From NCBI GenBank assembly GCA_907165135.1, contig OU015569.1, forward strand, positions 2,170,001-2,234,000: DNA of 64,000 nt, written 5' to 3'. The notes beneath the pieces are model-generated. The model saw only the letters and a program-made list of their open reading frames with translations. It did no database searches and had not been told where the DNA came from. Shown here piece after piece: positions 900 through 45,500 of the stretch (positions are counted from its first letter, which is position 1; every line of letters starts with the position of its first letter). Origin of the DNA: Oikopleura dioica (Eukaryota > Animalia > Chordata). The translations under genes were made by a program, and so were the position numbers.

Positions 900-3800
900 A
901 AATGGAGATGAGGAGTCCCTACTACGGCAGAATTCGCAGCCGACAGTCACAGAATCAACTTACTGGACAAAGGACAAGAATATCCCCGATCTGCTGGCGA
1001 ATTTGGATAGCGAGAAAAAGGTAAACATGTCTCAATCTGTCGATGCTGTCTGATCAGCATCTTAAGTTTTTTAATTATTCATTTCAAACTTTTATTTAGC
1101 CCGTTGGAAATCGACTCTCCACGCTAATGGGTGTGTTTTTCCCCACTATGCAGAATATTTTCGGGGTGATACTCTTCATTCGTATGAGTTGGGTGGTTGG
1201 CGTTTGCGGCTATCCTCAGGCTTTTCTTCTTGTCTCCACGTGTTGCCTCACTACCATGCTGACGGCAATCTCGATGTCAGCCGTCGCCACTAATGGCAAA
1301 ATATCGGCCGGTGGAAGTTACTACATGATCAGTCGCAACCTAGGCCCAAGTTTCGGCGGCTCAGGATAGAGTTCAAGTCAACATTCATTTTACGCCCGAG
1401 GAGTCGACTCAGCGACACAGCTACTCGCAATTAGCAGCTAAAGAACTCTATTAAAGTCGGCATACTGTTCTATTTGGGCACAACTTTTGCCTGCGCAATG
1501 TACATTCTCGGAGCAGTCGAGATCATCACCAAATACATCGCTCCAAGTTTATCGCTCGGCTGGGGATCGCCGGGAAGTGACGGCTTCTTCACTATATATT
1601 TTAACGATTGCAGAATATACGGCACAATCATCTTGCTATTAATGGTTACGATTGTTTATGTTGGAGTAAAGGCACGGGCTGAAAAACTCTTTCGAAAGAA
1701 CTTTCCAGAAGACGGATTAATTTTTCTCTTATTTGAGTGCCGTTTATCAATCAGAGCTTACCTCTACTAAATTAAAGTGACACTCGCTCCAGCCTGCGAA
1801 AGTATGTGAATTACTCCGCAAACATCTTCCTCGGAGTGACGCTGATTAGTATTGCCACTATTTTTGCTGGATTTGTTAAAAACGCTGCATTTCCTTCTAC
1901 TGCCCAAGATGATCTTCATGTCTGTCTGCTCGGGCCCAGATTACTCAGACAGCCAGAAGATGAATACTGCTCAGGTAATTATTCGCTCGAATCCTAATTG
2001 TATGCATTTTCTAAGCCATTCAATTTCGAACTTGAGCCTGAATTTGTCTCGTTTGTCAAAATAAATATTAAACTATCAATAGTGTACCGTAATGATAGTG
2101 GATCCTACAAGCCAACCTGGATCTACAACCAATTTTGTCCTCCTGTAAACGACTCAACCTTTGCTAAGCTGTTTGAAAATGATCAGCACTTGGCACCCTG
2201 TCATGATTATCTCAAAAAACTGGAGCTAGTATCTCGAGTACCAATTCCTGGTGCGGGAAACTCAGAGGAGTGGAAAATTAATATCAACTCTGGCTACATG
2301 GATCAAGGGCAATTCGTCTCTGCTGACCTAAACGCTTTCGACCAGAGCTCGCTCAATGTCTACAAGAATGAAACAGCTGAAAAGGAACTTGGTGACAAAA
2401 TCGATCAGATCTTCATTCGCGCTGATATGACGTCCTCTTTTGCTATCCTCATCGGTAATTTTTATCTGCAAGTACCGTAAATAACTTCGTTAGGAATCTT
2501 CTTTCCTTCTTGCACTGGAATCATGGCGGGAAGCAACCGTTCTGGAGATCTTGCGAATCCAGCAGCGTCTATTCCAAAAGGGACCATCTCTGCTATTCTT
2601 GTTACTTCTATATGCTATCTGTCAACGGTGATTCTTTTCGGTATCTCGGTCGACGGGGCTGTCCTTCGAGATAAGTTTGGTCAATCATTGTCAAGGTCGA
2701 ACAAGCTTCTAACAGCCAAAGTTGTCTGGCCGCACGAAATGGTCATGCTTATAGGTTGCTTACTCTCTACTCTCGGTGCTGGTAAGATTTATACCCAGCT
2801 ACTTGCGGTAACGAATATCATCAAGGTTTACAAAGTTTGACTGGTGCTCCTCGTTTGCTCCAAAGTATCGCCCGTGACGGGATCATACCTTTTCTACGCC
2901 CAGTAGCAGCTGGAAAACCGGGATCGGGAGAACCCACATGGGCAATTCTTGTCACTGCCGTTATCTGCGAGGTCGGAATCCTCATCGCTGCACTTGATGC
3001 CTACATAGCCCCGCTCGCTACTCTTTTCTTTCTCATGTGCTACATGTTCGTCAATGTAGCATGTGCGCTTCAGGGTTTCTTGAAATCTCCAAGTTGGCGT
3101 CCGACGTGGCGATATTATCACTGGGGCTTCTCCTGTCTTGGTGCCTTTCTTTGTTTTATGTTAATGTGGATGGTGGGCTGGAAACTGGTCCTTGTTGTCT
3201 TAGCGATTGCGCTCTTCCTTTACAAATACATTGGTAAGAATTAACCTCTCACTTTTTAGCAATAATTTTTTAGCCTACAAAGGTGCAGAAGCTGAATGGG
3301 GAGATGGTCTCAGAGGCTTGTACCTCTCCGTAGCGAGATATGCACTGTATCAAATGCCTCAAACCAAAGTAAGTGCTTCCTCTTCTATGTCTTCAATAAT
3401 GACTCTTTCACAGAGTCTACATACGAAAAACTATCGCCCACAAATACTCGCCTTTTGCAAATACGACCAAAAGTCCAAAACAATTTCAAATCCAGATATT
3501 GTCAAAGTTGCTCGCGATTTAAAGGCGGGCAAAGGATTGTCAATGTACGCCAGCGTGCTGGAAGGTGACATACTCGACTCGGAGTCGACCTCGGAAGTGG
3601 AAGAGTGCAAAATGCAACTCGGTAATCTGCTGAGACAACACGGTTGCAAGGCCTTCACGAATATTCTCCTCCAAAAGGACGTCCCACAGGTAATTTACTC
3701 GGATCTTTAATCAGTGAGAGCTTACGTGTCTTTGAGGGAATGTCAGCGCTAATGCAGACATCGGGCTTGGGCTCGCTAAAACACAATTCCGTACTGATCA

Positions 3801-4978
3801 GTTGGCCAAAAGACTTCGATAGAACATCGTCGACGACACGGTTCAACAAAACGCTTCGTGCTGCGAATTCGACCGGCCTTGCATGCATGGGTAAGATTTA
3901 CAAATGACAAATGCAACCAATTCTATATCGACGTTTAGTCACTAAATGCTCAAGCTCATGGCCCTCGGAGCCAATTCAGAAGGGAACCATCGATGTCTGG
4001 TGGATCATTCACGACGGCGGTCTAATAATGCTCGTCGCCTGGCTGCTCAAAAAGAGTCGAACTTGGAAGGGATGCAAGATTAGACTCTTTGCCGTCGCTC
4101 AGGATTCTGATAACTCTATTCTTCTGGAGCAGAGATTACAGGTAACTTACCGTTACAGTTTTCATTAATTATACAAATACTAACAGGAGCATATTGCTGG
4201 TCTTCGAATCGGAATCTCCCAAATAAAAGTTGTTGAACTTAACAAGCAGGACATAAGCGCGTACGCTTACCAGGTAAAAAATCAGTTCAAACTTAAAGTA
4301 AACATTTTTTTTAAAGAGAACGGTAAAAATGGACCAGCGAAACGAACTTCTGACAGAACTTGGCGTTGAGGACATTGGATTAGTGGCGGAAGAAGTCAGA
4401 GCAGGTAATTTGCTTGAGCCAGGGCTTTTTGAAACGGAGACAAATCAGCAAATAATTCTAAAGAGCGTAAAAACATTTTAGTGAGCGCAGAAAGTCAAAA
4501 TCATTTGGAGAAGATCGTCACCGACAATAATATGACATGGAGCCCGACTCACAACTCAAACCGCAACAATGCCGAAATCATCCATCAACTGAGGGTAAAT
4601 CATCTAATCAGAGCTCATTTAAAAAAAAAACGGTAGCAGATTCTTTATTAACCCAATTATTTAAAGCGGGTGAAATTCGACGAGTCGGACTATGCCAAGA
4701 CTTACGCAAGAATGCACAACGCTCGTGCACTCAACAACGTGATTTTGGATGATTCTGATAGTGCTTCGCTGGTCATTATCAACCTCCCAGCACCACCAAG
4801 CAATAACACAGAGCGGTAAGCATGTCCTTCAATCGCTGTTCAATACCCTCTTCTACCGTAAATAACAAACTCTAGTGAACGAACGTACATGATGTTTATC
4901 GAAGCGCTGACGATGAATTTGGAACGAGTTCTGTTAATAAGAGGCAGTGGGAAAGAAGTAATCACAGCATACGGCTAG
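900..4978 (+). CDS. SLC12 cation-chloride cotransporter, K-Cl (KCC) type; about 16+ exons, 5' end unresolved (may begin near 590)
   Basis: Spliced translation gives the KCC motifs [118 protein letters not shown] and the C-terminal [14 protein letters not shown] (TAG 4976-4978). Confidence 0.95.
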
Positions 4979-5928
4979 AAGCAAGAAGAAGCCTACTTTG
5001 ATCTCGTTTTACCTCTTCCGGACTCTATCACTCATTCACTTCCAGTTCTTCAGAACAAACAACTAGGCGCTTTTTTAAATTACTGAAAGGAACCCTATCA
5101 ACCAAGAATGCTTCAAATAATTGAGCCAAAACACACTTCACCGAACTGTTATTGAGCCTCAAGGTGTATTTAACTGTAACTAACTTAGTACTTCAAAATG
5201 CAGTAAATAATCTCTGAAATAAACCCAAAAAATCTTCTAAAAAAGCACGAGTGCGCACTCAAGAGGGGAATCTCACGAAGCATAATTATTAATTAATGCA
5301 TGCACCTTTGGATGAGTTATGAAAAGGTTATGTCACCGAGTGCTTCGTTCCGGTATTCGTCTTGTCTCTGCAGGGTTTTAAACGGATCCAGAGAATATCC
5401 ACTCCAGAAAAAGGGTGCAATGAAAGTCAAGAGTTCCGAATTTTGATGCGGTTGACGATTGAAAATGTTCCTCGGCTATCATATTTTCCTAACGGTGTCA
5501 TTATCAATTTCATTCCCTCAAAGATAGCATTGAAAGTTATCGCATCCGTCATTGGAGTTTTTTTTTATCGAAGATAGATTACGGTATTGGCAAAATAACA
5601 GTGTCTCCAGAAGATCGTATTTTTTTTCTTATAGCAGTTTATTCAGTGGATAATCTATCAGTCAGAATTCAAGCGTCAGATAGTTGTCGTTTTTACCGTT
5701 ATCGAAAAATAATTTATCTATCTCAAATGCTTTTAGTAGAGATTAGGAGCGTAAATTAACCGGATGTGTTTATTTTTTGGTGCTTTTTGGAGTCACAATG
5801 TGTTGAATTCGGGCTCGGCGAGGTTGTGTTGATACGAAATTGCGATTTTTCTATTCTCCGGTAAGTTGACTTTGTTTTCTGCAAAAGGGATCAAAATTCA
5901 AATTCCATGGATTTTTACCAAGTCAGCG

Positions 5929-7598
5929 TCAAAATTGACCCCGGCCTATTACATCGAGTAGATAGCAGGCAACGTCGGCGAATCTCATCGTATGATAGCG
6001 TGTTTTGTAAAAAGGATATTTATCTAAAATTGATCGTATTTTTTCTCGACGAAAAAGAAGCCTTGCCTATGATCGCTTGAACTCGATCAGATGCGTTCGA
6101 GATGATCGTCTTTTCAAGGCGGTCGCCTTTTCTGAGTCCAGGCGCGTGGATCGTATTCCAGTGCAAATTTTCACTTTTTTCGAGAACCTCGACAGCCGCA
6201 TTCATGTCCTCCAAAACATGGCCGATAAGGTGGCGGAGGAAAAATCGCGCTCCGCAACCAGAAAGCCCACCCTTTATCTCGCTTCCTTTATCGTCTGTAT
6301 ACCAAGACATGAGAGCTGAGGGTCAATGTTAACTGGAGGGACAATTCCGTTTAGGATTTACCGATGATGTTGAAGACGTCGCGTTCGGCCATCACCTCGA
6401 CAATCATTTTCATCCATTTCTGGTAGAGATCGATGTTCCATCCTTTGTTATTGCGTCGATGAAAATTTAGCGTACTTAGACACGGGCGAGAACGTTGCCT
6501 ACTTATTACTTGAGTAAACAGCTAAAGAAGTGGCGAGTCGTTACTTGGGACTTTTGTTTTGCAAATCTAACGAAATCTAAGCTACAAGGCTCCCCAGGTT
6601 AATGAAAACTTTATTACTTAGCCCTAATGAAGTGTAACCGGCAACATTCCCGCCCAAATTTCCTGAGGACAACGTTGATGCCTGAGAGACCTTTTGAGTT
6701 CAAAAAAGAAAATCATTCGAAGAAAAAAAACGATAAGAAGTGCATTTTGAACCTTTCCTTTGCCCACGGCAGCCGGGTCAAAAATATCGCACTCGATGAT
6801 GGTGAGATACTGTTTGGCACGCTCTTTTGCGAGATTTTCCACTTGACTCGACGGCCGATAGCGCGAGGAGCCAGGTCAGTCAGGGTCCGAGGGGAAGGGT
6901 GCGCTCGCTTGGAAAATCTCCCCCTGATTGCCTTTCACCTCTCGTTTGTATTTGGACACTTGTCGCTCTAATTTTTCCTTGCAAAGATTTGAAGAACTGG
7001 CAGCAGTTCAACTTCCTGTTTGCTCAGTTCACAATCGAACCAGAACTTTTACGAAAACTGAACGACTTCAACAGAAACTCTTGAATCTTTTCCTTGTTGC
7101 GCACGAAGCACGTGATCGTGTGATTGTTTCGCAGCGCCTGATCAGTGGGATACTTTTTTAAAATCATTTGCGTCATTTTTTCTGATATCGGCCAAGAAGC
7201 GAATCATTAATTTTTCCCAAGGTTAGAATTATCGAAAATGAATGGCCCGAAATCAATTGCATTATTGAAGCCACATTCAAAGCTATTTTCATTTTATTTA
7301 TCACAAGATTAAAGCTACTAAGTTGAGTAAATATTTTCAAGCGAATTTCGTCAGCACGTAGTGTGCTGTTTATTCTTCTAGTTCATTTTTACGCAAATAA
7401 TGACCTCGCGTGTGGCTTCTGGCAAGGTATTCTAATGGAATCGTATTCTTGACAATACGTGACAGTTACTGTTTGTCGATGATGGAGCTTGCTTTTGTTA
7501 AAGATATCCCGTTTTTCCTTTTCGAGAAAAAGGCTGCCCGTCTTTCCCGTCGCCCCGAAGAGAGCGATCTTGTAGATGTGCCTGGAAGTTGTTCTCCG
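5929..7598 (-). CDS. Atypical short-chain NAD(P)-binding reductase, flavin reductase/BLVRB-like; ends approximate
   Basis: The exons join into KIALFGATGKTGSLFLEK|ALRNNHTITCFVRNKEKIQ...IIECDIFDPAAVGK|GLSGINVVLS|TLNFHRR...HWNTIHAPGL...RFADVACYLL, with a Rossmann GxxGxxG motif. The model needs three GA-AG introns. Confidence 0.8.
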
Positions 7599-7666
7599 TC
7601 TAAAGTAATCGTGCGACGAACTGGTTCGCGAATTTTCGATTTTATTTACACTTTACGGGCGCGTAA

Positions 7667-8603
7667 AACATGAACTGCCGGAGCTCGGGAAAGAACTGCC
7701 GAACGCTAGGATGCTTACCGATGGAGAGCTTTCATCATTTCACTCATGTTTGCGGGAGAACTGATTACGTCAAATTTTATTCTTGTTTAGCGTTCCTTTG
7801 TCTCCTCAGCGCTCGAGCTGGAGCTCAAAGAAGTCGAAAAGCTCAACAATAATAACGAACGATCTTGCCTCTTCGTTGGCCTCTCTTTCTCTCCGTCTCT
7901 CTATTTTTCCCTCTGTCGAATTCCCCAAAAAGGAAGAAAAACGTGGAAGTAGTAGTGTGGAAGCGGGAGACTTTGAGTAATCTGGCGGTTCTCTCCGTTT
8001 TCGTTTGCGTTGCAGTAATGAGAATGAGCGCAACGCCGTGTGTAGCGCTCTGCGCCGCGAGTCAGCCAAGCACTTTCCCTGGGCAAGGCAAAAAAATAAT
8101 AACAGACCCGACAGTGCGATAACAAAAACGCAATATTTTATAATTATTATGAAAAATGAAAACTACGGTTCTGAAGAGTCGACTCTTTTTGCGTTAGGAA
8201 CGGAAATAATTTATTAATCGAGGCGTTTTGTATTTTTTACGAGTCTTGGATGAAGGATGAGCTGCTCTTTTTTCCAAATGCATCCGAAAGCAGGGCAAAG
8301 TAAGGATCCGTTAGACCCTGCGGCCATGAGAGGATATTATGCTTACTTTATGATTCAGAAGAGTATTTTTTAGTACTAGGTACACTCATGCTCCCGGTTA
8401 GAACAACTGCTCTTCAATCCATTAAAAGTAGACAAACTAGAAAAACAAATATTTGTTCAGACTGTATAGAAGACAACGGCTATGTTCATCACGAACAACA
8501 AATAATCTACAGTAGCCCTCTTCAGAAATTCTTGAAATCTCAGTGTCATCTGAGCAGTGAGCTTCTTATCAACCTGCATGTTATGAAACGCGTTCTATTC
8601 TAA
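7667..8603 (+). CDS. Probable small multi-exon gene of unknown function, divergent from the reductase
   Basis: There is a run of short protein-like open segments bounded by plausible splice sites (RSFVSSALELELKEVEK, SWMKDELLFF, PAAMRGYYAYF, DCIEDNGYV...KRVLF*). No family was recognised. Confidence 0.3.
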
Positions 8604-8739
8604 TTTGTCTAAAACCGAAAAGCGGCAAAGTTGCCCAGTCGCGTGGTTTTCGTGGTCGCCTTGAAAGGGCTTTTCCCCGATACAACGTACAGATAATAAA
8701 AATCTTGGACAATTTGATTGTTGGATTGAGTTTTGAATT

Positions 8740-8933
8740 TGTTGTGGTAACGATTTGCCTTGCAAAAGAATTGGAGAGCAATTATCCGCGGTTTTTTATA
8801 AAAGCGTATATTAGGCTAGTTTTCAAGTTAAAGAGTGAACAGAAAACGAGGCTTGCGCCGGCGAAGGTTATGAACAGCAGGTGCACGAGGCGAATCTCCA
8901 AATAAGGGAATCGGCAGATTCGCGATCACAACA
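8740..8933 (-). repeat. 3' LTR (194 bp)
   Basis: Direct repeat of 13965-14158. On the minus strand it is preceded by the polypurine tract GGGGGGA (8934-8940). Confidence 0.97.
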
Positions 8934-9059: not shown

Positions 9060-12000
9060 TTATGATCTTCCTTGGAAAGGTACAGTCTTTTTCCGGACGC
9101 GCCGCGGATATCTTTCGGTGAACGATGAGGCCGGTTCAGCGTCGGGTCGGCTCTTAACAACGGGGTTCTCGGGTTGATTTTGGCCGCAATAATCCGGGTC
9201 CAGGTGCTGTGGACGGTCCTTGTAGAGAATACAGTGATGTCGGTGTACCCAACTGAGCTTTCCACTAATGTCCAGTCGAACTATAACGCCATTAGTGTCC
9301 ACCACTTCAAAGGGTCCATTCCAAGCGCCCTTGCTCTCCTTCGTTTCCGCGGACATGGGTCTTTTTAGCAGAACTCTGTCGCCTTTGGTTATCGTTATTG
9401 GTTCAATTATAGATTTTCCCTTATTTTTAGCGACGAGGTCTGCTTCCGATTGAGCTAAATCGACGAGCTTGTGGACGCGGCTTAGGGTCGCGGCTATTTC
9501 AGTGGCGTACGTTTTTGGAGAATCCGCGGATGGGTTTTCGGCCATTTGTATTCCGTCGAACGAAGGTTTTCTTCCGTAAATAATTTCGAATGGCGAGACG
9601 CGCGTTGCCACATTTTTGCATTTATTCATAGTACTCACCACTGATGGTAGAACTAATTCCCAACACAGATTTCGTTCCAAGGCGATTCCATATAACGCAT
9701 TTTTGAGAACACGGTGTGATCGTTCTAGGCATCCAGTACTTTCCGGGCGATAAGGAACATGTAAATTCTGCTTGACTCCAAGCAAATGACAAAGCTCACT
9801 CAGCATTTCATTTCGGAAATGTTTACCTTGGTCGCTGCTGATAATCTTCGGGAAATCGTACAATAGAATGTGACGCATAATTTGGCGAGCAGCGTCACTT
9901 GCTCGGCACCTCGCAGTCGGATAAACCGACAAGAAACGACTGTATCCATCCATAATGGTTAATGCGTATGATTTACCGGTTTTCGATCGCTCGAGTTGTA
10001 TAAAGTCGACATAAATGATTTCCCATGGCCGCTTGGCACGGTAAAGAGTCTGCATATCTGGTTTACCTTTCTGCATGTCCTGGCCTTTTCTTTTCAGGCA
10101 AATGTCGCAACTTGAGACAAATCCGCGGATATCGTCCAATTGGTCGGGCCACCACGACCATGATAGCAATTCCCTTGTTCGATCAACTCCGGTGTGCGCT
10201 TTGTGATGAGCAGCTTTTAAATAGTGAGGAATAAGGCTTTTGGGAAGCACAAGGCACTTCTTTTCCCCCCAGTTGATCGTCAAGGCTTTACTCTCCGGAT
10301 GGATTTCCAATTTTTTCGACCAGCGTTTGTATGATTCTATGCCGTAAAGACTATCTGGGACTTGCCATTTTTCCGCGGATATTTTGTTTTCTACAAAGTT
10401 TTTTACTGTACCTATGAGTTTATCTTCTGATTGAGCATTTTCAATTATCCGCAGCTCCAGGATAGGTACATTTTCGCTCAGAACTCCTGTGGCAGCTGAT
10501 TTTAAAGCATAAATTTCCGCGGCGACTTCTTTGTTTTCGAGGAGCATTTTCTGTGGTAAACTTCCTCCACCGCACCATGACGGGATATAAATTATGAGGT
10601 CGCTCTCTCCGGCCGGATTGTAGAATTTTCCTGCCAGTTCGTCGCTTGGTTTTTCGTTTTTCGCACAGACTTTGTGCCACGGTCGTGACAATATATCTGC
10701 CAGACAATTGTCTTGTCCTTTAATGTACTGAATTATAAATCGAAACTTACTGAGTCGATCTTGCCATCTTTGGAGCTTGTCGTTTGCCATTATTTTCTTG
10801 TCCAAGGCGCATAAAGCTTTGTGATCGGTGAGGCATAAGAATGGCTTTCCCTCCAAATAATATGAAAATTTCTCGATTGTCATCAATAGTGCGAAAGCTT
10901 CTCGTTCCGTCGTTGACCATTTCGATTCTGTTGACGACAGTGTTTTCGAATAAACGGCGATCAGTTTTTGTTTGTTGCCGAATTTTTGCATAATGGCTCC
11001 TCCAATAGCCACTTTGGATGCATCGCAAACGACCACAAATGGTCGAGAAAAATCAGGAGACTAAATACCTTATTACTTGCCAAGATCCTTTTTGCGTTAT
11101 CGAAGCTCGCTTGAGCGTCGTCATTCCACTGAAATGGTTTATTTTGCCTGTTCAGCACAGACATTTCTTTGACGATTGAGCTGAATGAGTTGATGGCCAC
11201 TCGGTCACCAACGTTGCATGAGATCCAGCTTTTCCACCAACCAAGGGTTCCGAGGACTGACATTAATTCCTTCCTGTTCCGCGGTGGCTGCAATTCCTTT
11301 ATTGCTTTCATGTTTTCTTCTGGGATGCTTATCCCTTCCGCGGAAATTTGTCGGCCCATGAATTTTGTTGATCGCCGGCCGAAATTGCACTTTTTTCCCC
11401 CCAGCTTGACGCCGAATTTTTCACAGGCATCCAAAACCTGCTCCAAGACCTGAAGATGCGTTTCTTCGTCACGGCTATGTAGCAATATATCATCCACATA
11501 GCTTTTGAAGTTGTTTTGTAGCTTCACCGTCCCTAGCATTTTTGCGACACATTTGCAAAATGCGTCGCCGCTGTGTTTCATTCCAAACGGCATTCTGATG
11601 TACTGATACAACTTGTCCTTATAATAAAAATTCGTTTTATGTCGGTCGTCTGGGTGGATTTCCATGTTCCAATATGCCGCGTTTATATCAATGTCAGAGA
11701 AGATGTGGTTTCCAGTCTCAATGTCCGCAAACAAACAATCTATATTTGGCACGTTCCAGATGTCCGTCTCCTCTGTGAGGCACTGGTTAAGCCCGGACTT
11801 GAAATCGGAGCATACTCTTATATCGTCGTCTTTTTAGGGACAATGACTAGTGGACTGTGAAAACCCTTTCCGTCGGGGCACTCCTCGATTATCTTCCCAT
11901 TGAGCATCGTTTCCATCTTACCATCTACTTTCGGTTGCAGATGTTTGGCTATTGGCCGCGGTCGAGCGCTTTTCGTTAATCCAGGGATTGTCGGGATCCT

Positions 12001-12666
12001 CACTTGCTCCGAAAACAGGCCTACTTTATCGTTTGGCCCTTTGAAAACTTTTTGCTTTCGGAAGAGGATATTGATGAATCGTTCGAAATTTTCACCTTTG
12101 AAAATTGTGTTGTCGAGTTTTAGTTCTTTCGTTTTCTCCAGTAGTTCCACCTTTTGCTGCGTCGTTAATTTGCTGGCTTCCATCCTAAACAGCGCGTTGA
12201 CTTCTGACCAAGGGAATAGGACCCTTCGGCCAGAGTGAATCATTATTTCCATTCCATAACCGGCAATTTTGAAGCTTCCGTGCTCGCTGCTTGAGTGCCC
12301 TATGATAAAATCTTTGCCGAGGATTGCCGGCAAACCTTCTCTCACGATGTAAAAGCATACACCGCGGAATTTGTAATTTGATTGGTGAGCTTTCACTATT
12401 GCGGATATCCTACCAATTGATTTTATTCTTCCACATCCGCGGAATTCCATTGAAGTTGGCTCGATAAACTTGTGAAGTGACGATGGAAGGAGATGCATTG
12501 GCAAAATACATTTGTCAGATCCGCTGTCGACCAATGCAGTGACTTTTAGTGTAAATCCATTCATCATAAGTGTAATTTTTGTGTTGAAGAAAGAATTAGT
12601 GATATTTGTGCTGCACGATAAGCATGCTGATAATTCGCACTCATTACCAGCATTTATAGAAAAACC
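9060..12666 (-). CDS. pol: Retrotransposon Pol (protease-RT-RNase H-integrase), -1 frame relative to gag, broken by two 1-nt deletions in this sequence
   Basis: Protease LVDSGSD; RT YIRMPFG and YVDD; RNase H CDAS, TEREA, TDHKAL; integrase HHKAH...CDIC, VDFI, SDQG, GCLER. Frame breaks occur at about 11831-11835 and 11056-11057. Confidence 0.95.
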
Positions 12667-13688
12667 GACGCTTCATTTTCCTCTGGTAGACGTTCTTCTT
12701 CATTTGCTTGAGCAACGAAAGTGTTGGTCTTCTTACCGCGGTCTTCTTGTCGTTTAGGTTTCTCGTGACGAAATCTGCAGTTTTTGACTCTGCAGTTCCC
12801 AGAGGCAAAATACTTGCATATTGGCATTTTTGACTTTGGTTTCTGGCTCTGGCGTGCGAAAAATACTGATCCGCCCTGATTGGTTGTTTGAGAAATCAGG
12901 AATTCGACTTTTGTCGCGATTGTTTGAGCGTCTGAGATTTGAGCCCATTCATTGGCCATGTGTGCGTGCACCGAAGGTTTCGTGACTTTCAATCGCCCCG
13001 CGATAATGCTCGCAGAAACGAAGTCGAATATGTCATCCGCGGTTGGAGCATTAGTATCGTCGTTTTCTTGTGTGCCCGGGTTCTTTTTCATTTTGGTTCG
13101 GCGGATTTGAGCGCAAATAGCGGCTTTAGCCGGCTCCATACGATCTTCTATGTCCTGCGCGTACTTTTTCCACGGTGAATTTTCGTCGAATTGCGTTTCC
13201 ATTACTCTTGTTAAGAGTTGCAGCGCTGATAATCCCGAATCGTATGTTAAATTTAACCACTCGCGCAGCTCAATCCAAGTTTTCGTCGATTTTGTTGCGT
13301 TTTTAAGCCGCGAGTAAATTGAAGGGCTGAAGCGCAGCTTAACCTTTGACGCGAAGATTTCGTGCAATTTTGGGTCATCGGCGATATAAATTTCGTAAAT
13401 TTGTGTTACTTTGGAAGTGAACACCGATGTTTCATCGAAATCTCGCCCGCTGTATGTTAATTCGTTCAGGGCATTTTCCGCGGATTTGACCGCACTTGCC
13501 TGCTCTCTGGTTAACTCGTTACCTTCCACTTTGATCCCGTCGATGGCGATGTCCAGCTTTGCCTTGAGTTTCTTCTGTAATTCTTTTTTCTCTTTTGTGG
13601 CTGCTGAATTTGGCGAATTGAGCGCCGTTATTTCTTCATCTAGCTCAGCGATCGTTTCTCGGATCCATTTGAGAGTTTCGAGCGACAT
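12654..13688 (-). CDS. gag: Retrotransposon Gag (344 aa) with a C-terminal CCCH zinc finger
   Basis: First ORF after the PBS. It has a coiled-coil N-terminus and CKYFASGNCRVKNCRFRH near the C-terminus. Confidence 0.85.
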   Translation of the reverse strand: MSLETLKWIRETIAELDEEITALNSPNSAATKEKKELQKKLKAKLDIAIDGIKVEGNELTREQASAVKSAENALNELTYSGRDFDETSVFTSKVTQIYEIYIADDPKLHEIFASKVKLRFSPSIYSRLKNATKSTKTWIELREWLNLTYDSGLSALQLLTRVMETQFDENSPWKKYAQDIEDRMEPAKAAICAQIRRTKMKKNPGTQENDDTNAPTADDIFDFVSASIIAGRLKVTKPSVHAHMANEWAQISDAQTIATKVEFLISQTTNQGGSVFFARQSQKPKSKMPICKYFASGNCRVKNCRFRHEKPKRQEDRGKKTNTFVAQANEEERLPEENEASVFL

Positions 13689-14433: not shown

Positions 14434-17400
14434 TTATTGTCCCGATTTTCTGCTTTCGCGGCGTTGTTGTTGGCGCTTAGCTCGCAACTCGGCGCGAACG
14501 AGATTTCTTTGGGCACGCTTCTCTTGGCGAAGTTTCATCCGCTCCAGGCGCCTCTGTGTGCGTTTAATGTTCGCTGAACTTCCGATGTTGATGCTGTCTA
14601 AAGTTGTTACCCGTAATGATGATTTTCGAACGAATGAAATCTGTTCTGATCTGATGGAAAAGAATTGTAGAAAAATGCATGTTTTTTATATAAAATACCG
14701 ATAAAAAATACCTGAGGCGCTTTTTAACGACGCAATTTCATTCAACTGTGCAGTGAGATGCGGGTCAGCGTTTACTTTCACTGGCAGGCAGGGATGTGGA
14801 TCAGCAAAAATTTTCCTTTGTTTTGCGCTGCGATAGCGGAAATTTTTCGAACTTATTTTGCGCTGTTTTGCGCTGCGGAATCCGAAAATCGCGCAATTTG
14901 CGGAATTTTGCGTTGTTTTGCGGAAAATCAAAATTTGTTGATTTTGCGAAAATTTTGCGGATTTTGCGCTTTTTGCGGAATTGCGGATTGCGCAGATGAC
15001 ACGCAATTTGCGTAATTTTGCGAAATTTGCGGGATTTTCGCGCATTTTCCGTAAATTTGCGGATTTTGCGGGATTTTCGCGCATTTTGCGAAAATCTGCG
15101 AATTTTGTGGTATTTTTGGCCCCATTTATTTCTACTTGAAATGGAGAAATTTTGGGGACATTATTCCGAGGTTATAAAAAGATATTTTCAAGGTTTTCAA
15201 AAAGATTTTTTAAATAACGGGTGTGGGTGGGGTTGGGGACAGAACTGAGATTGATCAACTCAGAGTTCCAAGCCTTTGTCAAGCCCCTTAAATTTAGAAA
15301 TCAAGGAACGGGGCTGAAACGGCCCGAAGGGCCGTCAAGCCCCTTAAATTTAGAAATCATGGAAAAATTAAATTATCACCCAGCAAAATTCCATCGAACC
15401 GTCCGGTTTTATTTTTGCCGGCAAAATGACCGGCCGGTTAACTTCGAGATCGGACGGTTTTATGTCGGGTGATTTTTCTGTTTTTCTTCCGCAAATTACC
15501 GTCGAAGTTGAGAATGCGATGATGAATGAGGATTTGATTCGGAAATCTTAACAATTAACATAAAAAAATATAGAAATTCTACGCCAAATCCCGCAAAATC
15601 GCATTTTGCGGACTGCAAATGTATTGAGATTTTGTGGAATTTTCGCGCAAAATGCGCTTTTGCGCGCAATTTTGCGGAAAAATTGCGGAAATTTTTGGGG
15701 CTGATTTTGCGCTGTTTTGCGCTGCAGAATGAAAAATCCCGCATTTTGCGCTGTTTTGCGGATTTTGCGCTGCGGATCCACATCCCTGCTGGCAGGGAAC
15801 AGTTCTCGCCGCAAACAGACTCAATCCAGCCCATATACGACGTCACTCTAAATATTTACACGTACACCCTATAAAGTCTTTAATTGCCTTCAATACCTGG
15901 TAAACACGCCGTAGTTGGTCGACTGACCGCAAGTTGTTCCGAAAGAAGTGATTCCTGAAATGAACCAAGTTTTCGTTCCGTCATCACCTTCCGCCGCAGC
16001 CAAGAGCGGCCCACCCGAGTCCCCTTCGCAGGTGTTTGCGTTCGACGTGCCCGAGCCCGCACACATTTGGTATTCGGCGCTTTTTCGGTTTCACGATTCA
16101 ATTTCGCTAAAAAATTTGATACAGTTCGTCTTCAAAGACGTGCATTTATTTTTTAGCTCGAGAACCAGTCCTGTAAATGAGATAAATGTCTTGGCAGATC
16201 TGATCGTCGACGACGTCCATGTCTACTTTTTGAAGGGTCTTAGCCAGGGAAGTTCCCTCGCCTGCTTTTCCCCAGCCGATAACGACGCGTTGTTGCTCCT
16301 CGAAGCTGACAGCTATCGAGGGAAGACAGACTGGCCTGATAAACTCGGAGAATCTCACCGATCGTGGAATGCCAATCAGCGCGATGTCGTGACTGTTCGT
16401 CGCATAGCTGAAGCGAGGATGCGGCTCAATTAGGTTTGGCACGATCATCTCAATTCCGTTATCTATCGAGCTTATCCCGGCTATCTACCTGGATGTCTTC
16501 CGTTGAAGTGAACAATCGTGAGGTTCCTCCGATCGCCAGCAAGTACTGAGCAGCTTTTGTGTTGACATTGTTGGACTGAAATTTAATAAAGCGTCAAAAA
16601 CCACTTATTTCGCAAAAAAAACTCACCTGGTCGAGAAAACAGTGCGCAGCTGAAAGTACCCAGTTAGAGCTTACTAATGTGGCGCCACAGATAAGATTTC
16701 TGAAAACGTTACTCTCTTTTCTAAAAGGTTAACTTGTGTTTGGCACCTGTTGCGGAGTAACTGCACTGCCCATGGCCACTCTCCGGTGTTGGCATTGCGT
16801 CCGCCGAGGATGCGCGTCACGGGGCGAGAAGAGAATCGCGACTGCTCAAGGAATGCGCCGCTTCGGCCACAGAATGGACTTGTAGATTTCTGTGGACATT
16901 GCTCGATCGTAATGCATCGTCCATCGTGTAGCAAATGCCGCTCAGGCGGACAAGCACACCCGGCCCGGCACGTTTGCTCGCTGCAGCCCGCTGGATATGG
17001 ATCCGCGCATGTCGCCACACTTTCGCAAACGCAAGGCTGCCAAGCTTACACAGGTTTAACATTTCACTAAGTTCATCACAAAATAACGAATATTTCTAAC
17101 CATCGCGCCCCAAGCCCAATTTTGCTTTTGGGCCGCAACAGAAACTCAACTATTTTTGTGAAAACATTGAATTGGACCGCATGGTTATGTTCTAAAAATG
17201 ATTAAACCCTTCATTTATCGCCCTCGCATCTTTCATCCAGCTTGGTTTTTTGTACAAAGGACCATCTTGCTGCAAAGCCCGCAAACTCGCTTCCTTTGTC
17301 CGAGTTGAACTGGAGTTGCATTCTGTTTGAAGAGGAGAATATCGGCCCTGGAACGCGCTTGCCGCAGAACGTTCGCTCCATTACTGAATCGACTACGACT

Positions 17401-37220: not shown

Positions 37221-37491
37221 TGCTCTAGTGATTTTTTCAGTATTGTTTTCGTTTATTTTCTTTTATTTGAAAGATTGCACAATAAAGTTTAATGAAAGTC
37301 AATGAAGAATCGTCACTTACGATGAACGGTTATATAGGTTGAAACTATATAGATAAGGAACATGTTCGATTATAGCCTTTTTAGGTACTCAAAGTGAAGA
37401 AATGGACGAGATTGTTTATAGTAGCAGATTTTGCATTTAGATAATGGAACAAATAGTTTGTAGTAACAAGTTTTCATTTACAAGAGTGGCT

Positions 37492-39165
37492 TCAGTTAAC
37501 CCCGATCTGGCGCCCCAGGATTTCCCAATTGTTCACCATCATCTTTTGGACGGCGATTAGGGCGTTGTATCGAACTGTTTGGTCCTTCAAGCAAAGGCTT
37601 AATCAAAGCAGATAAGTTAGTATACCTGATGCGCCATTAGCTGCATGACAGTTTGCTTAGCCGAGATTTCATCGATAACTTGTCTTCCTCTTGGATAATG
37701 CGTCACAAACTCCCCTAGATCATGGCATCCTACACTCAGGCACTGAAATAATAGAAATTAGTAAGTAAATTCCTTAGACGGTGTCAACCTCGGTGTTTTG
37801 ATCGGTTTCGAGAATGTGTGTCAGTCTCCGCAGGATCTTGTAGTCTTTTTCAACGAGTCTTTGGGCATTCTCCCTCCAGAATTTGTTGTTTGTGTGTACT
37901 GGACTCCAAGATAGGCGACCCGAGTTGACTTCAGAGCTGAAAAGACCTGTTAAACATAAATAGAGAAAGAAAACCTTACCAGAACTCCTCAAAGCTTGAG
38001 AGGTTTTGCTCGACTTCGGAAAGCTTGGCGACGACGATTTTCAGATCTTCTTCCATTTCTTCGTCTTCGAGTTGTTTCTCTGTCAAAACCTAGTAAGACG
38101 AAATAAATTCTTGAAGAAGAATGACAAAAGGCTAACCTGTATCGACTTTTGGACCTTGCAGCCGATCAATGCCGAGCAGATATCACGAGCTTTATCAGCG
38201 TTGCATTTTTCGATTAGATTTCGGAAGACTGCCAGGCAAATTCTAGAGACTTTCTGCTTTTCCGTTTGGCGAAGGACATCACAGACTGGGATCGTGATCT
38301 GTTTTTTGAAAAGATCATCTGCACACGAAAAACTGATCAGCCAAAAACAGCAAACAACCTGAAAAAATACTCATATAAATAATGAAGGACTTTTTCAATT
38401 ATCACCTGATATTGAAGCTGAAAGCCTTGGTTTCGAGTAGCAAGAACTTCCATCAGTTGATCAACAATGCCATGCTCGACGACTAGCTTTCGATAACATT
38501 CAGCGCGGAGTAAGATCATCAATGCGGAGCTAGTAGCAGTCAACCATTCGGCATTTAGAGGCGTCAGCTGTCCGCGAATCCAACCGAGGTAGCCGTCCGA
38601 CTCGGCGGACGAGAAACGAAGCTTTCCAAAAGTAGCTAGCTTTGCTGATATTCTAACCATGAGTTTGACGATAAGTTCTTCTATTTAAAAATAGTCGTCG
38701 TCATGACAAACTCCGTTCCTAGCGGCTTGATTACAAATAAACTTGTCCGGTCTTGAGAGAAGCGTAACGAAAGGAGTCCAAGCTTGCTGTCCAAGAGTAA
38801 CAGCATGCTCGTGGAAGATCATGATGTTCTCCTTGTTCATCGTAAGAATATCATCAACCATGGTCAACAAGTATCGCACAGTCTGATCGCGTGCAATCTG
38901 CCCGATCAAATTCGTGAGCGCTTTGGCTGCGTTTTTCCCGTAGCGATCGAGAATTTGCTGCTTATTGATGGCGTTCTTTTCAGCATCGAAAGCGTTGATG
39001 AATTCGAAGTCTTCTTCCGAAATCATTTGGCTGTGAGAAAAACATTAAATCGGCAAGATCGTACGATGAAAATCACCTTTGACGATAACTTTTCCAGTTG
39101 ACGATCAAAATTCTGGTATTTTTGATCTCATCTTGGAGCAAATCCGCAGCAGGCAAGTCAACCAT
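37492..39165 (-). CDS. ATP6V1H: V-type H+-ATPase subunit H
   Basis: [37 protein letters not shown]...[22 protein letters not shown] and [13 protein letters not shown]. Confidence 0.97.
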
Positions 39166-39338
39166 CTCTTTAAAAGCGCAAAATTAGCTTGGAAAATTTA
39201 GAAATGAATTAGTTAGAAATGAACTAATAAATGAACAAGGCGAATTTAAGTCGTAAAGAAAATTGAACTAGAAAGAAGAAAGTTTGAGACAGTTTGCTCT
39301 ATTTTGCAGCAAGCAAGTCTTGCGTCTTGCTCAAGACT

Positions 39339-42018
39339 TTACTCAATTGGCAGTTGATACTTCGCTTGTTGAAGTTGCTCGGAGGCTTTTATTCGCTAAA
39401 AACACTTAGTTTGCGAAGACGTTTTTTTCGTACCTTCAGAAGTTCTTTTCCTTTTTTGAAAAAGCCTTCTTCAGAGGATAATTTCGCGATAAAAGTGGCG
39501 AGAGGACGAAGCGGCCTCAGCGTCACATCGGTGAGATGCTTGAACCATGAGCTCGGAAGGAGTTCGACAATCCCCGCGCACCTATTCAAAGTATTTCCAT
39601 CCTAAAAAGAACGGCTCAGCAAGGATTTTCTAAGATATTGCGATAAAGCGATCGAGGAAAAATGGTTAGCGATAAATGAAGTAGAAACGGCTGGCAGACC
39701 TTTGGCAGTGATCTGAGCCTCATTAAGAGGTCTTTATTTATAAGTCCATCGATAACAAGGCTTTGCAGCGTGTGGGAAGCAAAGAATTCGTCAAACTCGA
39801 GAATATTTCGAACAAGTTTCAAGGATCGATTCCACTGACGCTGGAAATAAAGACCCTCGCCAACAGTGAAATCGGGTTTTCTATCAGAATCCAGAATAGG
39901 AATAAAAATATCTTCGTCGCGGCATCTTCTATTTCAAGAGTTATTCATTGCGCCATTAATTTAGCGAATTTGAGCAATCTAGCGTAAATTCTAGCATTAA
40001 AAACTCTTTCACTGAGACGGGCAAGAATGTTCGCGGCGAGTTTCTTCATTTTGTCGTCTTCTTGGTGCGCCCATGGCAGGTTCTTCATCAGAGGCGAGTA
40101 AAGAAACTCTGTTAGACATTTCGTCTGTCTTGAACTGATCGGGTCGTATATCTCCTTCACCCACCAATTGACAGTTTCTAGAGGATACTTTCCAAGGACA
40201 AATGGGAGCAACATTAGTTCTGGTTCTTCAGGGGCGATCGAATAACGTATCACGTTTTCTAGCGTTTTTGTCTTCTCGAGCGAGCAAGTTTGAGGCGTCC
40301 AACCTTTCATTTCCACCTTTAAAACGGGAATAATGATCGAGCCGGCGCATTCTTCAACGAAGCAGACTTTGTACCAGCGAGGAAAGCTCACACGCCACTT
40401 GTTGAAGCGATTGAGTAAAAGATGACTGTCCGTGTATTCTTCAACAACATCTGCGTAAATCTGTAGCCGCTCTTCTTCCAGCTTTCGAAATTTTTCTTCG
40501 AAAACAGCAGCGTTCTCCGGATCGAGCTCATCGTCTGTCGAGTCTCCTGGCTCGTGATGCTTAGACTTTGGACGCATTTCAGCTCGTCTTCGTCTTCGTC
40601 CATCTCGAGCACTAAATTTATTTTGAATGAGACGATTAGGAATAAGCTAGTCTCGTACCGAATTCTGCTTTGAACGTCGGGCGCCAGGGTCTCAATAGGA
40701 ATGCCGTTTTTCTTTCCGTGAAAGGGAAACTGCTGGCCACAGTCCTTCACGTCCAGTTGTCTTCTCCGCAGAACAACAGACGCTCTTTCCGCTTGAAGAT
40801 CTCGAAGTTGTCTGTGCCACTTTTCGACGTCTTCCCGCTTCGAGTTGATGAAATTCGTAAAGTCTTTAAGCCACGCTTTCATTTCGCTGAAGTAAGTGTA
40901 TCGTTCTTGCAGCTCAATTTCGCTTGCTTCTTCTCTAAACAAAAAATACACGTCCTCGTCCTAAATCAACGCTCTTACGGAAGTGGTTCTTCAGATCTTT
41001 CTTCCTCGGCCTTAATGTTCTTCAAATTCTGCTGGCATTCTTCTAGACGCTCTTTTACATCGCCAAGTTTGTTTTCCATTCGTGTCAGGACGTTCTCGAT
41101 ATTCTTCATATTCCTCGTCATTGTTTCCAACGGCGTACTCGACATATGCCCTGGCACATTCGAGCCTCGTATCAACTCGGATTCCCATCTTTAAAAAATG
41201 GTTAAAATAAAGCAGCAAGAGGGAGTGTTTACTTTTGGACGGATTCGTCATCACGCTCTCGGCCAACGTCGATGTCGTCTTGGGCGAATCCGTTTGTTCT
41301 AACACCTTCCATTTTAATTACATTTTCTTCGCCGTCAGAATCTTGCTGCGCCAGTCGACCGCCTTTTTTCGACGCTTTGGACTATAAAAATGTTTCTCTA
41401 TAGATCAAAAGTGGCAGTATCTCTTACCCTTGAGATGGGAATGTAGGACTCTTCTTTGTTTCGTCTAGCTTCTTCTCTTCTTTTTCTGGCTTCGTGGATG
41501 GCATTGGCGTCGGGAATGGCACCTCCTCCGCCCATTCTGTCCAAGATCTTTTCCCTGAAGGCGCTTTTGACGCCCGCCTGGGCATCAGCTCTGTCGAGTT
41601 CTTCTGAATTCATGATCACCGGCGCCGTGTCCATTGGAATGGATTTCTGGGTATTCTTCAGCCGAGAAAGGTCCGCAGCAGAGTAGCTATTCCCCGATCC
41701 CCAGTAAGAGCCGCGATTCTCCTTTGACTCTTTTTCCACTTCGCTTCTTAGCTTTTCTGCGAGTTTGCGACTTCTGTTCGACTTTTTGACCTTGAATTCT
41801 GCCGAGTCTCCTTCTGTATCGTCATCTCCGAAACTCAGTGCTGGCTTGGGCTTGTTCTTCTTCTCCTTTTTCGCCTTTTTTTCTTTTTTCGCTTTTGGCT
41901 GAATTGGAGGAGTCGGAATGGCGGATTCTTCCGCCTCTTCGATTTCCATGTCGTCGCCATCGTCAGTTTCAATTTTGCGAATGCTTCTTTGACCTCGCGG
42001 CTTTCGAGATCGAAACAT
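39339..42018 (-). CDS. PAXBP1: PAXBP1/GCFC2-family spliceosome-associated protein
   Basis: LSFGDDD, FKVKKS, IPDANAIHEARKRR, KWESELIR, RFNKWR, DIFIP and YFQRQW. Confidence 0.9.
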
Positions 42019-42598
42019 TCTGAATGACAACTTCCATTACTTTTAGTAAACTTTCTAAAAGTCACGCAATGAACCACAGTACGGCGATTTTCACCTCCAG
42101 CGTATTCAATTCTAACATAAGACTAATGTCAACAGTGATTTTCGAACAAATCGGCAAAGTTTCGAGAATTTCACGCAAGAATCAAGATATTCAAATGAGA
42201 GACTTTAATCTTGCCATTTTTGCTGACTTGACAATTTTTCCAAAAAAAAGATTCATTTTTTTGCATTTTCGCAACTTCTCTAGATTTCCCGCCTACGCAC
42301 GTCTATAAATTGCCCTTCTCCCCATCAAAATTTTCAAGCGAAGAGAAATTCAGCGTATTCGTCAAATAAACTGTCTTGCCTTTTATTTTTTTCTTTTCCT
42401 TTTTGAGGTCTGCTGATCTGTGGCGCTCAAAAAAACTCGCACGCGCTTGTGATTGGCCGCTCAACCTTCGGACTTTCTCCGTATTCCTATAAAGAAGTCA
42501 TTAAAATTTGATGGCTGCAATAATGCGCTTTTTGACAGTTTTTTGAAATTTCAGATTTCGGATTCTGAAAAGAAAATAGAGAATCACGATTGAAGAGG

Positions 42599-45500
42599 AT
42601 GGATTCTTCTTCACAAAAAGAGTCCCAGAAGAAGAGCGACTCTTCTCAGAAGAAAAAGAAGAAAAAACCAAAGAAGGAAAGAGTTATCAATCAATATTAG
42701 TACATATCAAAGTTCGAAAATTGAGCCGTTTATGAACAAGTTTGATAACTGAAGCCAGTTAAACAGAGGTCATTATGAGAAGTTCTTGAAATCGAAGGGT
42801 TGGGTCGATCCAAATCTTGCTTCAGTGGCAGAAACAACGACTTTGCTCAAGAATTTCTTCAAAAAGCTTTCCGAGCTCAGCAAACAGCATGACTTCGAGG
42901 AAAATGCGGAGAGAACTCAATCGTAAGTTCGCTGAAAATCTCAAATATCTATCATTTATTCAAAGAATTCTCCACAAAAAATATGAGCAGACTTCAAAAC
43001 GCTTCAAGAAGAGCATGGAATGCGTGAAGATCGTCAACAAAGCCCTGTGCGAGGTGACTGCTGAGAACTGGATTTCTCTCGCGAAAGAGATGGAGGAAAT
43101 GTTTAATGCGCGCAAAGAGCAGGTTTGCGAAGAAACGACCAAGTTGGCCGAGAAACACGAATCCTGGAAGATCGAGGATTTGTACGACCGACTCTATGAC
43201 CAGCTAGATGCTATACATAAGAAGATAAAAGATCTCGAGAAAAAAGGTGAGTCAAAAGTAGGGCGGGAGTAGAGGACCCCATTGTAGGTTCTCTTCTATG
43301 TCTTCAAATTGAATTGAAAAGAAATTCGATTTATCACTTCGTTTTTTAGAAGAGGCATTGAGTGACGAAGAAGCCTGGGGAAACAAATCCAACTACTTGC
43401 GACAGTGCGAGTACAAAAAGCAGGCTGTGAAGATTTACTCAAGGATTCAAAAACTGAATCACGAAACATGCAGTCTTAATCGCGCTCGAGGAAAGTTGAA
43501 AACTCTGTCTGTTCTCGTTCAAGCTCGTGAGCAATCAGTAAAGAGCTAAGATTTTCAACTGAATCAGACAAAAAGATCAAGCTAGAGAAGATTCAACTTT
43601 TGAACAACCCAGAGTTCAAAAATCTGCAACAAGTCCTCGAAGCCTTCATCAATTCCGAAGAGGATCTGCCGGACATTGACGACTACAAGGACTTGATTAA
43701 TAGATGGCGAGATAAACATTTGAAACGCGAACCAGAAAACAAGAGTATACAGAAGCTGACTGGGAAAGCCCTGATTGCAGTTGCTTCGCAGGTTCTACGG
43801 GAGGCGACAGAAAAGTGGAGCAAGAGGCGAAAAAAAGACTTTGCGGAAGATTTTCTTACGGAAGTTTCTCAGCCAAAGGATCAAGAACTGGAGAAGAAGT
43901 TGAACGAGAATAAAAAGCGCTGTAGATACATGGACAAGCCGGTCAAGAGTGTGAACGAGCTCCTCAATGAATTCATGGTGAAGCAAGAGGCTCAGGATAT
44001 CGGCTTTGATGAGATCGACCTTGAGGATAATGAAGAAGACGAAGAAGATCAAGAATCCAAGTCTTCAGTCTCTTCGAATGAATTCGGGTAAGTTCTTATT
44101 TTCCGTAAGTTTTGACTAAACAATCTCTGAATAGCTTTTAATAATTTTCTTAGACATTTGATTGCAGAATGTGAATCAGAGGTCGAATTCGACAAAGACG
44201 ATGAGTTGTTTGATGAAAACAAGCCATCGACTTCTGCTTTACCACCTGGAATCCCTAAGCCAGATACCCCAATGGAAGAGTCTTCCGATGAATGGTCTGG
44301 ACCAGAAGATGACGGGAAGGAAGCTGTTCCAGAAGAAGAGTCCTCTGATGAGTGGTCTTCGCCGGAAAACAACGAGAACTCTTCGAATAATGAGAAAAAC
44401 ACGAGCCTCCAGCTCCCAAGCACTTCTGCTTCAAACGGATTTCTGATAAAAGCGGAACCTGTTGCAAGAAACGAGCGCTCTTCCCAAGAAAACAACAAGA
44501 ACAACTCATCTGCTGGTCTACAACAAGGACCAAAGTCTGGAATCAAGGAAGAGTTCGGCTATCAAAAGCAACAGCTTGCATCGACTCCACACGAAAACCT
44601 CGTGGTGAAGGAAGAGCATGTACATGTAAAAAAGAAGCGTAGAGTTCAGCTTGTTTCTAGACCTTTGTCTGATTCTGAAAAATCGAGTGATGAAGAAATC
44701 AAAGAAGTTAAAAGTTCAACTGCTAAAAAGTCGAGGGATCCAAGTATCTTGGATGAACTTGAAGGGTCAAGTGATGACACGCCGCTAGACAGCCTTTTTG
44801 GGGAAGAAGAAAAGGAAAAAGTGATGTCTAAGGCAGAGAAGCTCACCGCTGAATATAAAGCACAGAAGGCAATACATGAAACTACCAAAGCAGAATACGA
44901 AGCACAGGTCGCTGCCTATGAGGCAAGGAAGAAGGAGAGGGAAGCAATGAAGAAGGAGAGGGAGGCAAAGAAGGCTAGGAAAGCAGCTAGATTAGCGAAT
45001 CCGAGTATTCTTGATTGCCTTGAGACCCAGTCTTCATCTGAGTGCCCTCCAAGCTCTTCCACTGCCGATGAAATGATGCCTTCAACATCGAGAGCACTGA
45101 AACCTTCAGAAGATATACCTAAAAATATTTCTAAGGAAATAATAAAACTGGTTCTACTCGGAGAAAAGTTTAAAGAAACTAAAAAGAAAAAACAACAGCC
45201 TATTGATCCTATCGTAATCGACTCGGACTCTGATGATGGCTACAAAGCTGAACCAGAAGCATCGCCTCAGAAGAAAAAAATAACAGCGAAGCCTTCGAAG
45301 GAGAAGAAGCAGAAGAAAGGAGACGATAACTGTCAAATTCTCATCACTTCTTCAGACGAAGACGAACCGCCACCCCTAGAAGCAAGCACCAACAAAGCAA
45401 AGAGAGCTCGCGCTCTTGATTCTCCGAAAACATTTGAAGCTAATATAGCTAAAAAGAAGAAAGTAGTCTCTCCGCCGAGACCTGTCATAACTCCGCCCCC

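Follow-up and report, generated by a model that had tools for sequence, protein, structure and literature searches.

We re-analyze the introns of a 64-kb window of the Oikopleura dioica genome (GenBank assembly GCA_907165135.1, contig OU015569.1, positions 2,170,001 to 2,234,000 of the forward strand), in which an initial annotation had placed eight GA-AG introns and had proposed that the two ends of each are paired by an inverted repeat in a fixed register. The window is the whole stretch of DNA analyzed, and all coordinates below count from its first base. In O. dioica, which serves as a chordate model, about one intron in nine has a donor other than GT, and the minor spliceosome is absent; published ideas on how these non-GT introns are recognized include a U1 variant and changes in N6-methyladenosine (m6A) on small nuclear RNAs (snRNAs). 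The window has introns of 40-50 nt, G*-AG introns are frequent in it, and its closest match is to a larvacean transcript, as befits the O. dioica complex. Our non-GT set comprises ten introns, namely the eight GA-AG introns of the initial annotation together with 6978-7092 and 1672-1802, and across this set we find an end helix that is real, highly non-random, specific to non-GT introns and held in a fixed register.

The register of each helix is given by two numbers, with a the nucleotides ahead of the 5' arm and b the nucleotides beyond the 3' arm. A KCC/SLC12 gene on the plus strand carries a 92-nt GA-AG intron (1365..1456), whose 9-bp helix joins 1366-1374 (ATAGAGTTC) to 1443-1451 (GAACTCTAT) with a=1 and b=5, and a 131-nt GC-AG intron (1672..1802), beyond the original list, whose 7-bp helix includes one G-U pair and joins 1675-1681 (CGGGCTG) to 1790-1796 (CAGCCTG) with a=3 and b=6. 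On the minus strand, a BLVRB-like NAD(P)-binding gene contributes a 188-nt GA-AG intron (6475..6662), in which the arms 6640-6656 and 6483-6499 form 16-17 bp that are Watson-Crick except for three G-U pairs (a=6-7, b=8-9), and a 67-nt GA-AG intron (6691..6757) with an 8-bp helix between 6745-6752 (GTTCAAAA) and 6698-6705 (TTTTGAAC) (a=5, b=7). Also on the minus strand, the 115-nt GA-AG intron 6978..7092, which comes from an RNA sequencing (RNA-seq) junction and was likewise not on the original list, has a perfect 7-bp helix between 7084-7090 (AAAGATT) and 6983-6989 (AATCTTT) (a=2, b=5), and the 380-nt GA-AG intron 7138..7517, placed by reading frame and BLVRB-like continuity, has a 6-bp helix between 7505-7510 (GGGATA) and 7147-7152 (TATCCC) (a=7, b=9). 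The BLVRB-like gene holds at least four GA-AG introns inside 1.1 kb, and its micro-exon of 28 nt (6663-6690, minus strand) is flanked by two stem-closed ones. A further candidate in this gene, a 36-nt GA-AG intron at 6842-6877 (minus strand) that is required to skip an in-frame stop, has ends that pair over 6 bp at a=4 and b=2 and, if real, breaks the register rule.

Three more GA-AG introns of the set lie on the minus strand. The one inside a trypsin domain (16080..16170, 91 nt) has a core of 4 contiguous bp, 16163-16166 (GGTT) with 16087-16090 (AACC), at a=3-4 and b=6-7; its minimum-energy fold has 9 terminal pairs with a bulge and makes the entire intron a single hairpin (z=-3.35). Between CUB and TIL domains, 17045..17212 (168 nt) has a 7-bp helix joining 17202-17208 (GGTTTAA) to 17053-17059 (TTAAACC) (a=4, b=8), and in the V-ATPase subunit H gene, 38653..38718 (66 nt) has one of the same length joining 38707-38713 (GAGTTTG) to 38661-38667 (CAAACTC) (a=5, b=8). 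The tenth intron, 43491..43567 (GA-AG, 77 nt, plus strand), belongs to a poorly conserved gene and has a 9-bp helix between 43494-43502 (AGTTGAAAA) and 43552-43560 (TTTTCAACT) (a=3, b=7). A register scan combined with reading-frame logic yields one more candidate, an 82-nt GA-AG intron at 42677..42758 (plus strand) with a 9-bp helix between 42682-42690 and 42742-42750 (a=5, b=8), which, in the 43491-43567 gene, would link a first exon that is short and rich in lysine to the exon after it.

In transcript orientation, all eight introns of the initial annotation begin with GA and end with AG (plus strand for 1365 and 43491, minus strand for the remaining six), and the reading frame is unbroken over each of them. 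The spacing it reported (a = 1-7, b = 5-9, overhang b-a = 2-4) reproduces exactly. Its stem length of 7-16 bp fits most of the introns and is generous for 7138 (6 bp) and 16080 (4 contiguous bp).

The stagger of the two arms is the constant of the set. The difference b-a is 2-4 in 10/10 non-GT introns, both in an ungapped search and independently with RNAfold, and it stays that tight across introns that range freely in stem sequence, in length (66-380 nt) and in a+b (6-16). In this register the first intron base lies opposite position -3 to -5, and the acceptor (N)(N)AG alone dangles. Under RNAfold, which takes no account of the register, every one of the ten non-GT introns is closed by 6-10 terminal pairs, as against 13.8% of random genomic segments and 3 of 25 GT-AG introns, and the mean folding z-score is -1.9 for non-GT versus +0.05 for GT-AG introns.

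The chance expectation comes from scoring the 15 registers of the initial annotation in 200,000 random genomic segments. The resulting p is 2e-4 for 1365, 2e-5 for 6475 (G-U allowed), 4e-4 for 6691, 0.004 for 7138, 0.058 for 16080, 0.0013 for 17045 and again for 38653, and 2e-4 for 43491. As these eight introns themselves served to define the register, the fair test is provided by the two introns that were found independently of their stems, and both obey it (6978-7092, p=0.0013; 1672-1802, p=0.013). The second of these is a GC-AG intron, and the rule is therefore not confined to GA donors.

As controls we used 33 GT-AG introns, comprising 13 from the KCC gene, 10 from a DNA ligase I gene modeled on four full-length homologues, 4 from the trypsin domain and 6 others placed by an uninterrupted open reading frame (ORF) together with a consensus donor. 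The register helix has a median of 2 bp in these introns, and one of at least 7 bp occurs only in 4274-4316, an A/T run. With G-U pairs allowed, register helices of at least 7 bp are present in 9/10 non-GT versus 1/29 GT-AG introns (Fisher p = 4.6e-7); four GT-AG introns scored later had no register helix (0/4). The seven GT-AG introns of 60-108 nt have no stems either, and length alone is therefore not the cause. In the regions that were modeled without regard to stems (the KCC gene, the conserved part of the DNA ligase gene and the CUB-TIL-trypsin gene), 4/4 non-GT introns are stemmed and the 29 GT-AG introns are not. It follows that selection by the initial annotation does not explain the pattern.

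Broader scans were tried and set aside. An unbiased inverted-repeat scan with a tally of flanking dinucleotides had no power, its signal being drowned by chance repeats, and an ab initio intron finder (ORF continuity, codon usage) and a register scan with an ORF filter were too noisy for use as controls. Those noisy scans nonetheless flagged 6978-7092 and 42677-42758.

The pattern could in principle be an artefact of intron placement or of how the listed introns were chosen, with the true junctions canonical and elsewhere or the introns picked for their stems. We consider this very improbable, and the junction evidence is best followed gene by gene. The KCC model comes from a purpose-written protein-to-genome spliced aligner guided by the protein of transcript L001, an intron-less 3.4-kb transcript (metagenome contig Ga0115100_10177201) with a single 1060-aa KCC/SLC12 ORF, presumably that of a different larvacean sampled in a marine metatranscriptome. 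L001 and the KCC gene of the window share 70-81% identity in the best-conserved exons and about 34-50% in divergent parts. Among all G*-AG solutions of this alignment, 1365-1456 scores highest, and the protein segment GP(S/E)FGG(S/A)VG(I/L) runs uninterrupted over its junction in L001, L002 and L003. The spliced alignment also recovers 1672-1802, with stems playing no part. GT-AG alternatives in the KCC gene remove conserved residues; at 1672, the GT that lies 6 nt upstream would drop the residues VK. That GT is part of a consensus-like GTAAAG (within 1666-1677, plus strand) placed exactly 6 nt upstream of the GC-AG donor, an arrangement that recalls the human FGFR "dead-end" GA donor, which needs a GT 6 nt upstream (as cited in PMC7072748).

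Elsewhere, protein domains carry the argument. The intron at 38653-38718 splits the Pfam V-ATPase_H_N profile at position 128|127, its flanking exons matching 25-128 and 127-219, and the upstream ORF terminates at an in-frame stop within the intron. On either side of 17045-17212, the Pfam CUB match ends at profile position 109/110 and the TIL match starts at 7/55, with an in-frame stop inside the intron, and 16080-16170 lies inside a trypsin domain that was reconstructed exon by exon and that matches Pfam Trypsin. In models built without stems, 1365, 1672, 16080 and 17045 are the sole non-GT introns of their regions. For 5/10 non-GT introns, including 6475-6662 and 7138-7517, there is no in-frame GT-AG alternative within 30 nt. 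Together with the two stem-independent introns that follow the register, these observations speak against misplacement and against selection. In favor of an artefact, 43491-43567 was placed by ORF continuity (59 and 174 codons) and the donor consensus AG|GAAAGT and has many in-frame GT alternatives, all of them weak; the register was derived from the same eight introns; and the RNA-seq junctions are two in number and come from a diverged lineage.

The RNA-seq evidence consists of 17 and 39 partial reads, which derive from a lineage diverged by 5-10% and give two usable junctions. RNA runs under the species label match the window at 90-95% and in exon cores only, and they therefore represent a different cryptic lineage from that of the assembly; for the DNA runs X5 and X6 the difference is about 1-2%. 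One RNA joint (6694->6769) contains 7 replaced letters, removes a net 67 nt and supports 6691-6757. The other (6975->7091) skips 115 nt (6976-7090), can slide by up to 6 letters and supports 6978-7092. Homologous-protein searches with the CUB exon and with a 564-aa exon returned no O. dioica orthologues.

The non-GT introns differ from the GT-AG introns in more than their first bases. They are longer (median 104 nt versus 45 nt) and slightly less AT-rich. Their donors read like a GURAG in which another base stands in for the U (GAAAG, GAAGG, GAACG), and an exon-end AG precedes 9/10 of them; the initial annotation was correct that seven of its eight upstream exons end in AG, the exception being 17045, whose upstream exon ends in AT. 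Their acceptors are mostly AAG, whereas those of GT-AG introns are mostly TAG with a T-run, and A stands at -3 in 7/10 non-GT versus 5/29 GT-AG introns. The T count at -15 to -4 is marginally lower in the non-GT class (p=0.06), and the pyrimidine count does not differ. With AAG at the acceptor, both splice sites of the class therefore appear weak. This acceptor pattern, like the stems, their register and their restriction to non-GT introns, is a direct observation.

The stems had also been described as unrelated to one another, which holds in part. Seven of the 5' arms have in common an (A/G)GTT(C/T/G)A-like core, the complement of which gives (T)NAAC in the 3' arm at about -9 to -12. As this motif resembles the TAAC/TAAAC motifs that GT-AG introns have 7-19 nt ahead of their AG, the 3' arm may overlap the branch region. 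AAC at -20 to -5 occurs in about 7/11 non-GT and 13/29 GT-AG introns, which is no significant difference, and we therefore keep the branch-site idea as a lead.

The explanation we favor, to which we give about an even chance, is that the helix would act as a clamp on the pre-mRNA that offsets weak splicing signals, and that it probably derives from palindromic insertions. GA-AG and GC-AG introns would be spliceosomal introns in which the signals are weak at either end, the donor not being GU and the acceptor usually having A at -3 and little of a U-rich tract. A short helix in the pre-mRNA, reaching from just inside the donor to 5-9 nt upstream of the acceptor, would keep the two ends together, and we infer that it forms in vivo and is needed for splicing, where it would help the single U2-type spliceosome to match the correct weak sites. 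Such assistance would fall to introns two to eight times the normal length of 40-50 nt. As the 3' arm often contains the branch-site-like (T)NAAC, the clamp may also hold the branch region. The inverted repeats themselves would have arrived in inserted DNA, MITE-like (miniature inverted-repeat transposable element) or otherwise palindromic, and the inserts retained would be those whose ends pair in this register. In favor of the clamp, the introns do not resemble recent repeat copies, with no flanking duplication in 9/10 and no second copy in the window, yet the cores of their arms are perfect over 7-9 bp, or over 17 bp with G-U exceptions alone.

Several observations weigh against the clamp. 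In the register columns, G-U and A-C mismatches occur in balanced numbers (31 vs 28, no excess), and sense and antisense strands fold equally well, with no strand asymmetry; a palindrome at the DNA level explains the data equally. The helix starts at +2 to +4 in four introns, where it would compete with U1/U6 pairing, and if the branch site lies within the 3' arm the helix would compete with U2 as well. The stem evidence comes from one genome sequence, and RNA supports two junctions only, in a diverged lineage. Inverted-repeat insertions do hit larvacean genes, as seen both from a young hAT MITE that adjoins a coding exon in the window and from the precedent of Fritillaria.

The last of these points leads to a second explanation, namely that the stems are relics of transposon ends with no function in RNA. 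The fixed register would then reflect the recruitment of splice sites from target-site duplications and element ends, not structure. We hold this to be somewhat unlikely. In its favor, the non-GT introns are far longer than normal, as inserts would be, neither the G-U and A-C counts nor the folding of the two strands show asymmetry, and a 9-nt direct repeat (CAAGGAAAA) spans both junctions of 6978-7092. The young hAT MITE (14781-15796), with its 8-bp duplication CTGGCAGG and inverted repeat CAGGGATGTGGATC, places an insertion of this sort beside a coding exon. However, in the other nine introns the shared flank is AG plus 0-2 nt, with no duplication apart from the AG needed for splicing, and blastn of each intron against the 64-kb window found a second copy for 0/10. 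Between the repeats and the splice sites are 1-9 nt, whereas in Fritillaria the sites fall within the repeats. Were the arms the termini of elements, a+b should equal the duplication length, yet a+b ranges over 6-16 and b-a takes both parities, so that no single duplication length fits; a strict hAT model for these introns (a+b = 8 with an 8-bp flanking duplication) was rejected. Neutral repeats of the same age, moreover, should not stay perfect over 7-9 bp once the duplications have decayed. Given the lack of duplications (9/10) and of second copies in the 64 kb and the variable a+b, the introns do not look like recent MITE copies. The initial annotation had offered clamp and decayed MITE side by side; its stems are real, class-specific and registered, and the window does not separate the two readings.

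The constancy of b-a across unrelated stems and lengths raises a third idea, in which the helix itself would be a ruler for the splice sites, with the 5' cut a nt upstream of the stem base and the 3' cut a+2-4 nt downstream, and in which donor recognition might be U1-independent. The helix covers donor positions +2 to +6, the usual U1/U6 site, in four introns, and the Euglena code N3-CDG...CHG-N5-6 has an equal offset (PMC12501133). Against a ruler, G+1, the GURAG-like GAAAG donor, the exon-end AG and the terminal AG are all kept, which points to an ordinary spliceosome tolerating one degenerate position, and a spans 1-7, so that no absolute distance is fixed. We regard this sequence-based proposal as quite unlikely. 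A form of it in which the helix would present the two splice sites, staggered by a constant 2-4 nt, to the spliceosome, any G+N donor being accepted, perhaps without normal U1 pairing, we regard as unlikely.

The hAT element is non-autonomous and young. It contains an internal TTTTGCG-like repeat array besides its duplication and inverted repeat, and it adjoins the last trypsin-domain exon, whose ORF runs into the element. At 9060-13688 on the minus strand lies a Ty3/gypsy-like long terminal repeat (LTR) retroelement with retroviral protease, reverse transcriptase, RNase H and integrase domains, divided among four overlapping ORFs that differ in frame; the stretch 12612-12675, which the initial annotation had described as a "-1 frameshift cassette," falls between the first two of these ORFs. 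An Rfam scan of the window gave no matches.

The end-helix rule may explain how the many non-GT introns of Oikopleura are spliced. A rule by which a non-GT donor goes with a terminal helix in fixed register would give a mechanism that is directly testable and would offer practical aid in annotating non-GT introns. It would also connect larvacean intron evolution to the transposon-derived introns of Fritillaria and, by geometry, to the euglenid code. A true ruler would amount to a general, convergent, structural definition of introns with a stagger equal to that of the Euglena code, and would account for the escape of about 12% of Oikopleura introns from the GT rule.

Previous work on O. dioica gives G*-AG introns as about 11-12% of all introns (PMC8008620) and has published the flank logos of GA-AG introns, with which the exon-end AG and the A after GA in our set agree (PMC7072748). 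These papers describe dinucleotides and 7-nt flanks and propose a U1 variant (PMC7072748, PMC8008620). End-pairing is not mentioned in PMC7072748, PMC8008620 or PMC13326754; an earlier description is possible in Denoeud 2010 or Henriet 2019.

Helices that bridge spliceosomal introns are known from other animals and from yeast. In fish (AC)m-(GT)n introns, a bridging helix enforces the pairing of splice sites, can stand in for a weak polypyrimidine signal and dispenses with U2AF2 (PMC4691745), and yeast has "zipper" stems between the 5' splice site and the branchpoint (Goguel and Rosbash 1993, as summarized in PMC4691745). As in Oikopleura, where the acceptors appear weak, complementary segments stand beside the 5' splice site and the branch/3' region. 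The fish and yeast helices, on the other hand, consist of simple repeats or lie well inside the splice regions, with no tie to non-GT donors and no fixed register.

Euglenid nonconventional introns (N3-CDG...CHG-N5-6|R; PMC12501133, PMC11282704), to which the initial annotation had likened the class, also have a short helix near both ends. The likeness extends to the offset, as the euglenid 3' spacer is 2-3 nt longer than the 5' spacer and the Oikopleura offset is 2-4 nt, and a transposon origin has been suggested for the euglenid introns too (PMC12501133, PMC11282704). The geometry of the comparison thus stands, but membership does not, since G+1 and the terminal AG are kept. Euglenid introns have no fixed terminal dinucleotides, whereas G is first and AG last in 10/10 of ours; they have a fixed CAG/CTG motif at fixed distances, whereas our stem sequences differ and a varies over 1-7. 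Their removal is thought to be non-spliceosomal, by machinery that is undefined, while the Oikopleura introns keep a GAAAG-like donor and a terminal AG, a consensus at both sites that favors removal by the spliceosome.

The closest relative for comparison is Fritillaria borealis, whose AG-AC/AG-AT introns derive from introner MITEs (Henriet et al. 2019, as cited in PMC11282704 and 10.1101/2025.08.15.670264). Both species are larvaceans with a U2-type spliceosome only, and in both abundant non-GT introns come with terminal inverted repeats, an introner trait that is present in our set as repeats of 6-17 bp in 9/10 introns and as a bulged 9-pair helix in 16080. In Fritillaria the inverted repeats are themselves the splice sites, and target-site duplications and element families are visible; the Oikopleura junctions lie 1-7 nt (5') and 5-9 nt (3') outside the arms, duplications are absent in 9/10 introns, the window shows no family, and the introns keep their 3' AG, unlike the AG-AC/AG-AT introns. 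Taken together, the comparisons suggest that the feature belongs with introns that are bridged by structure or that bear inverted repeats.

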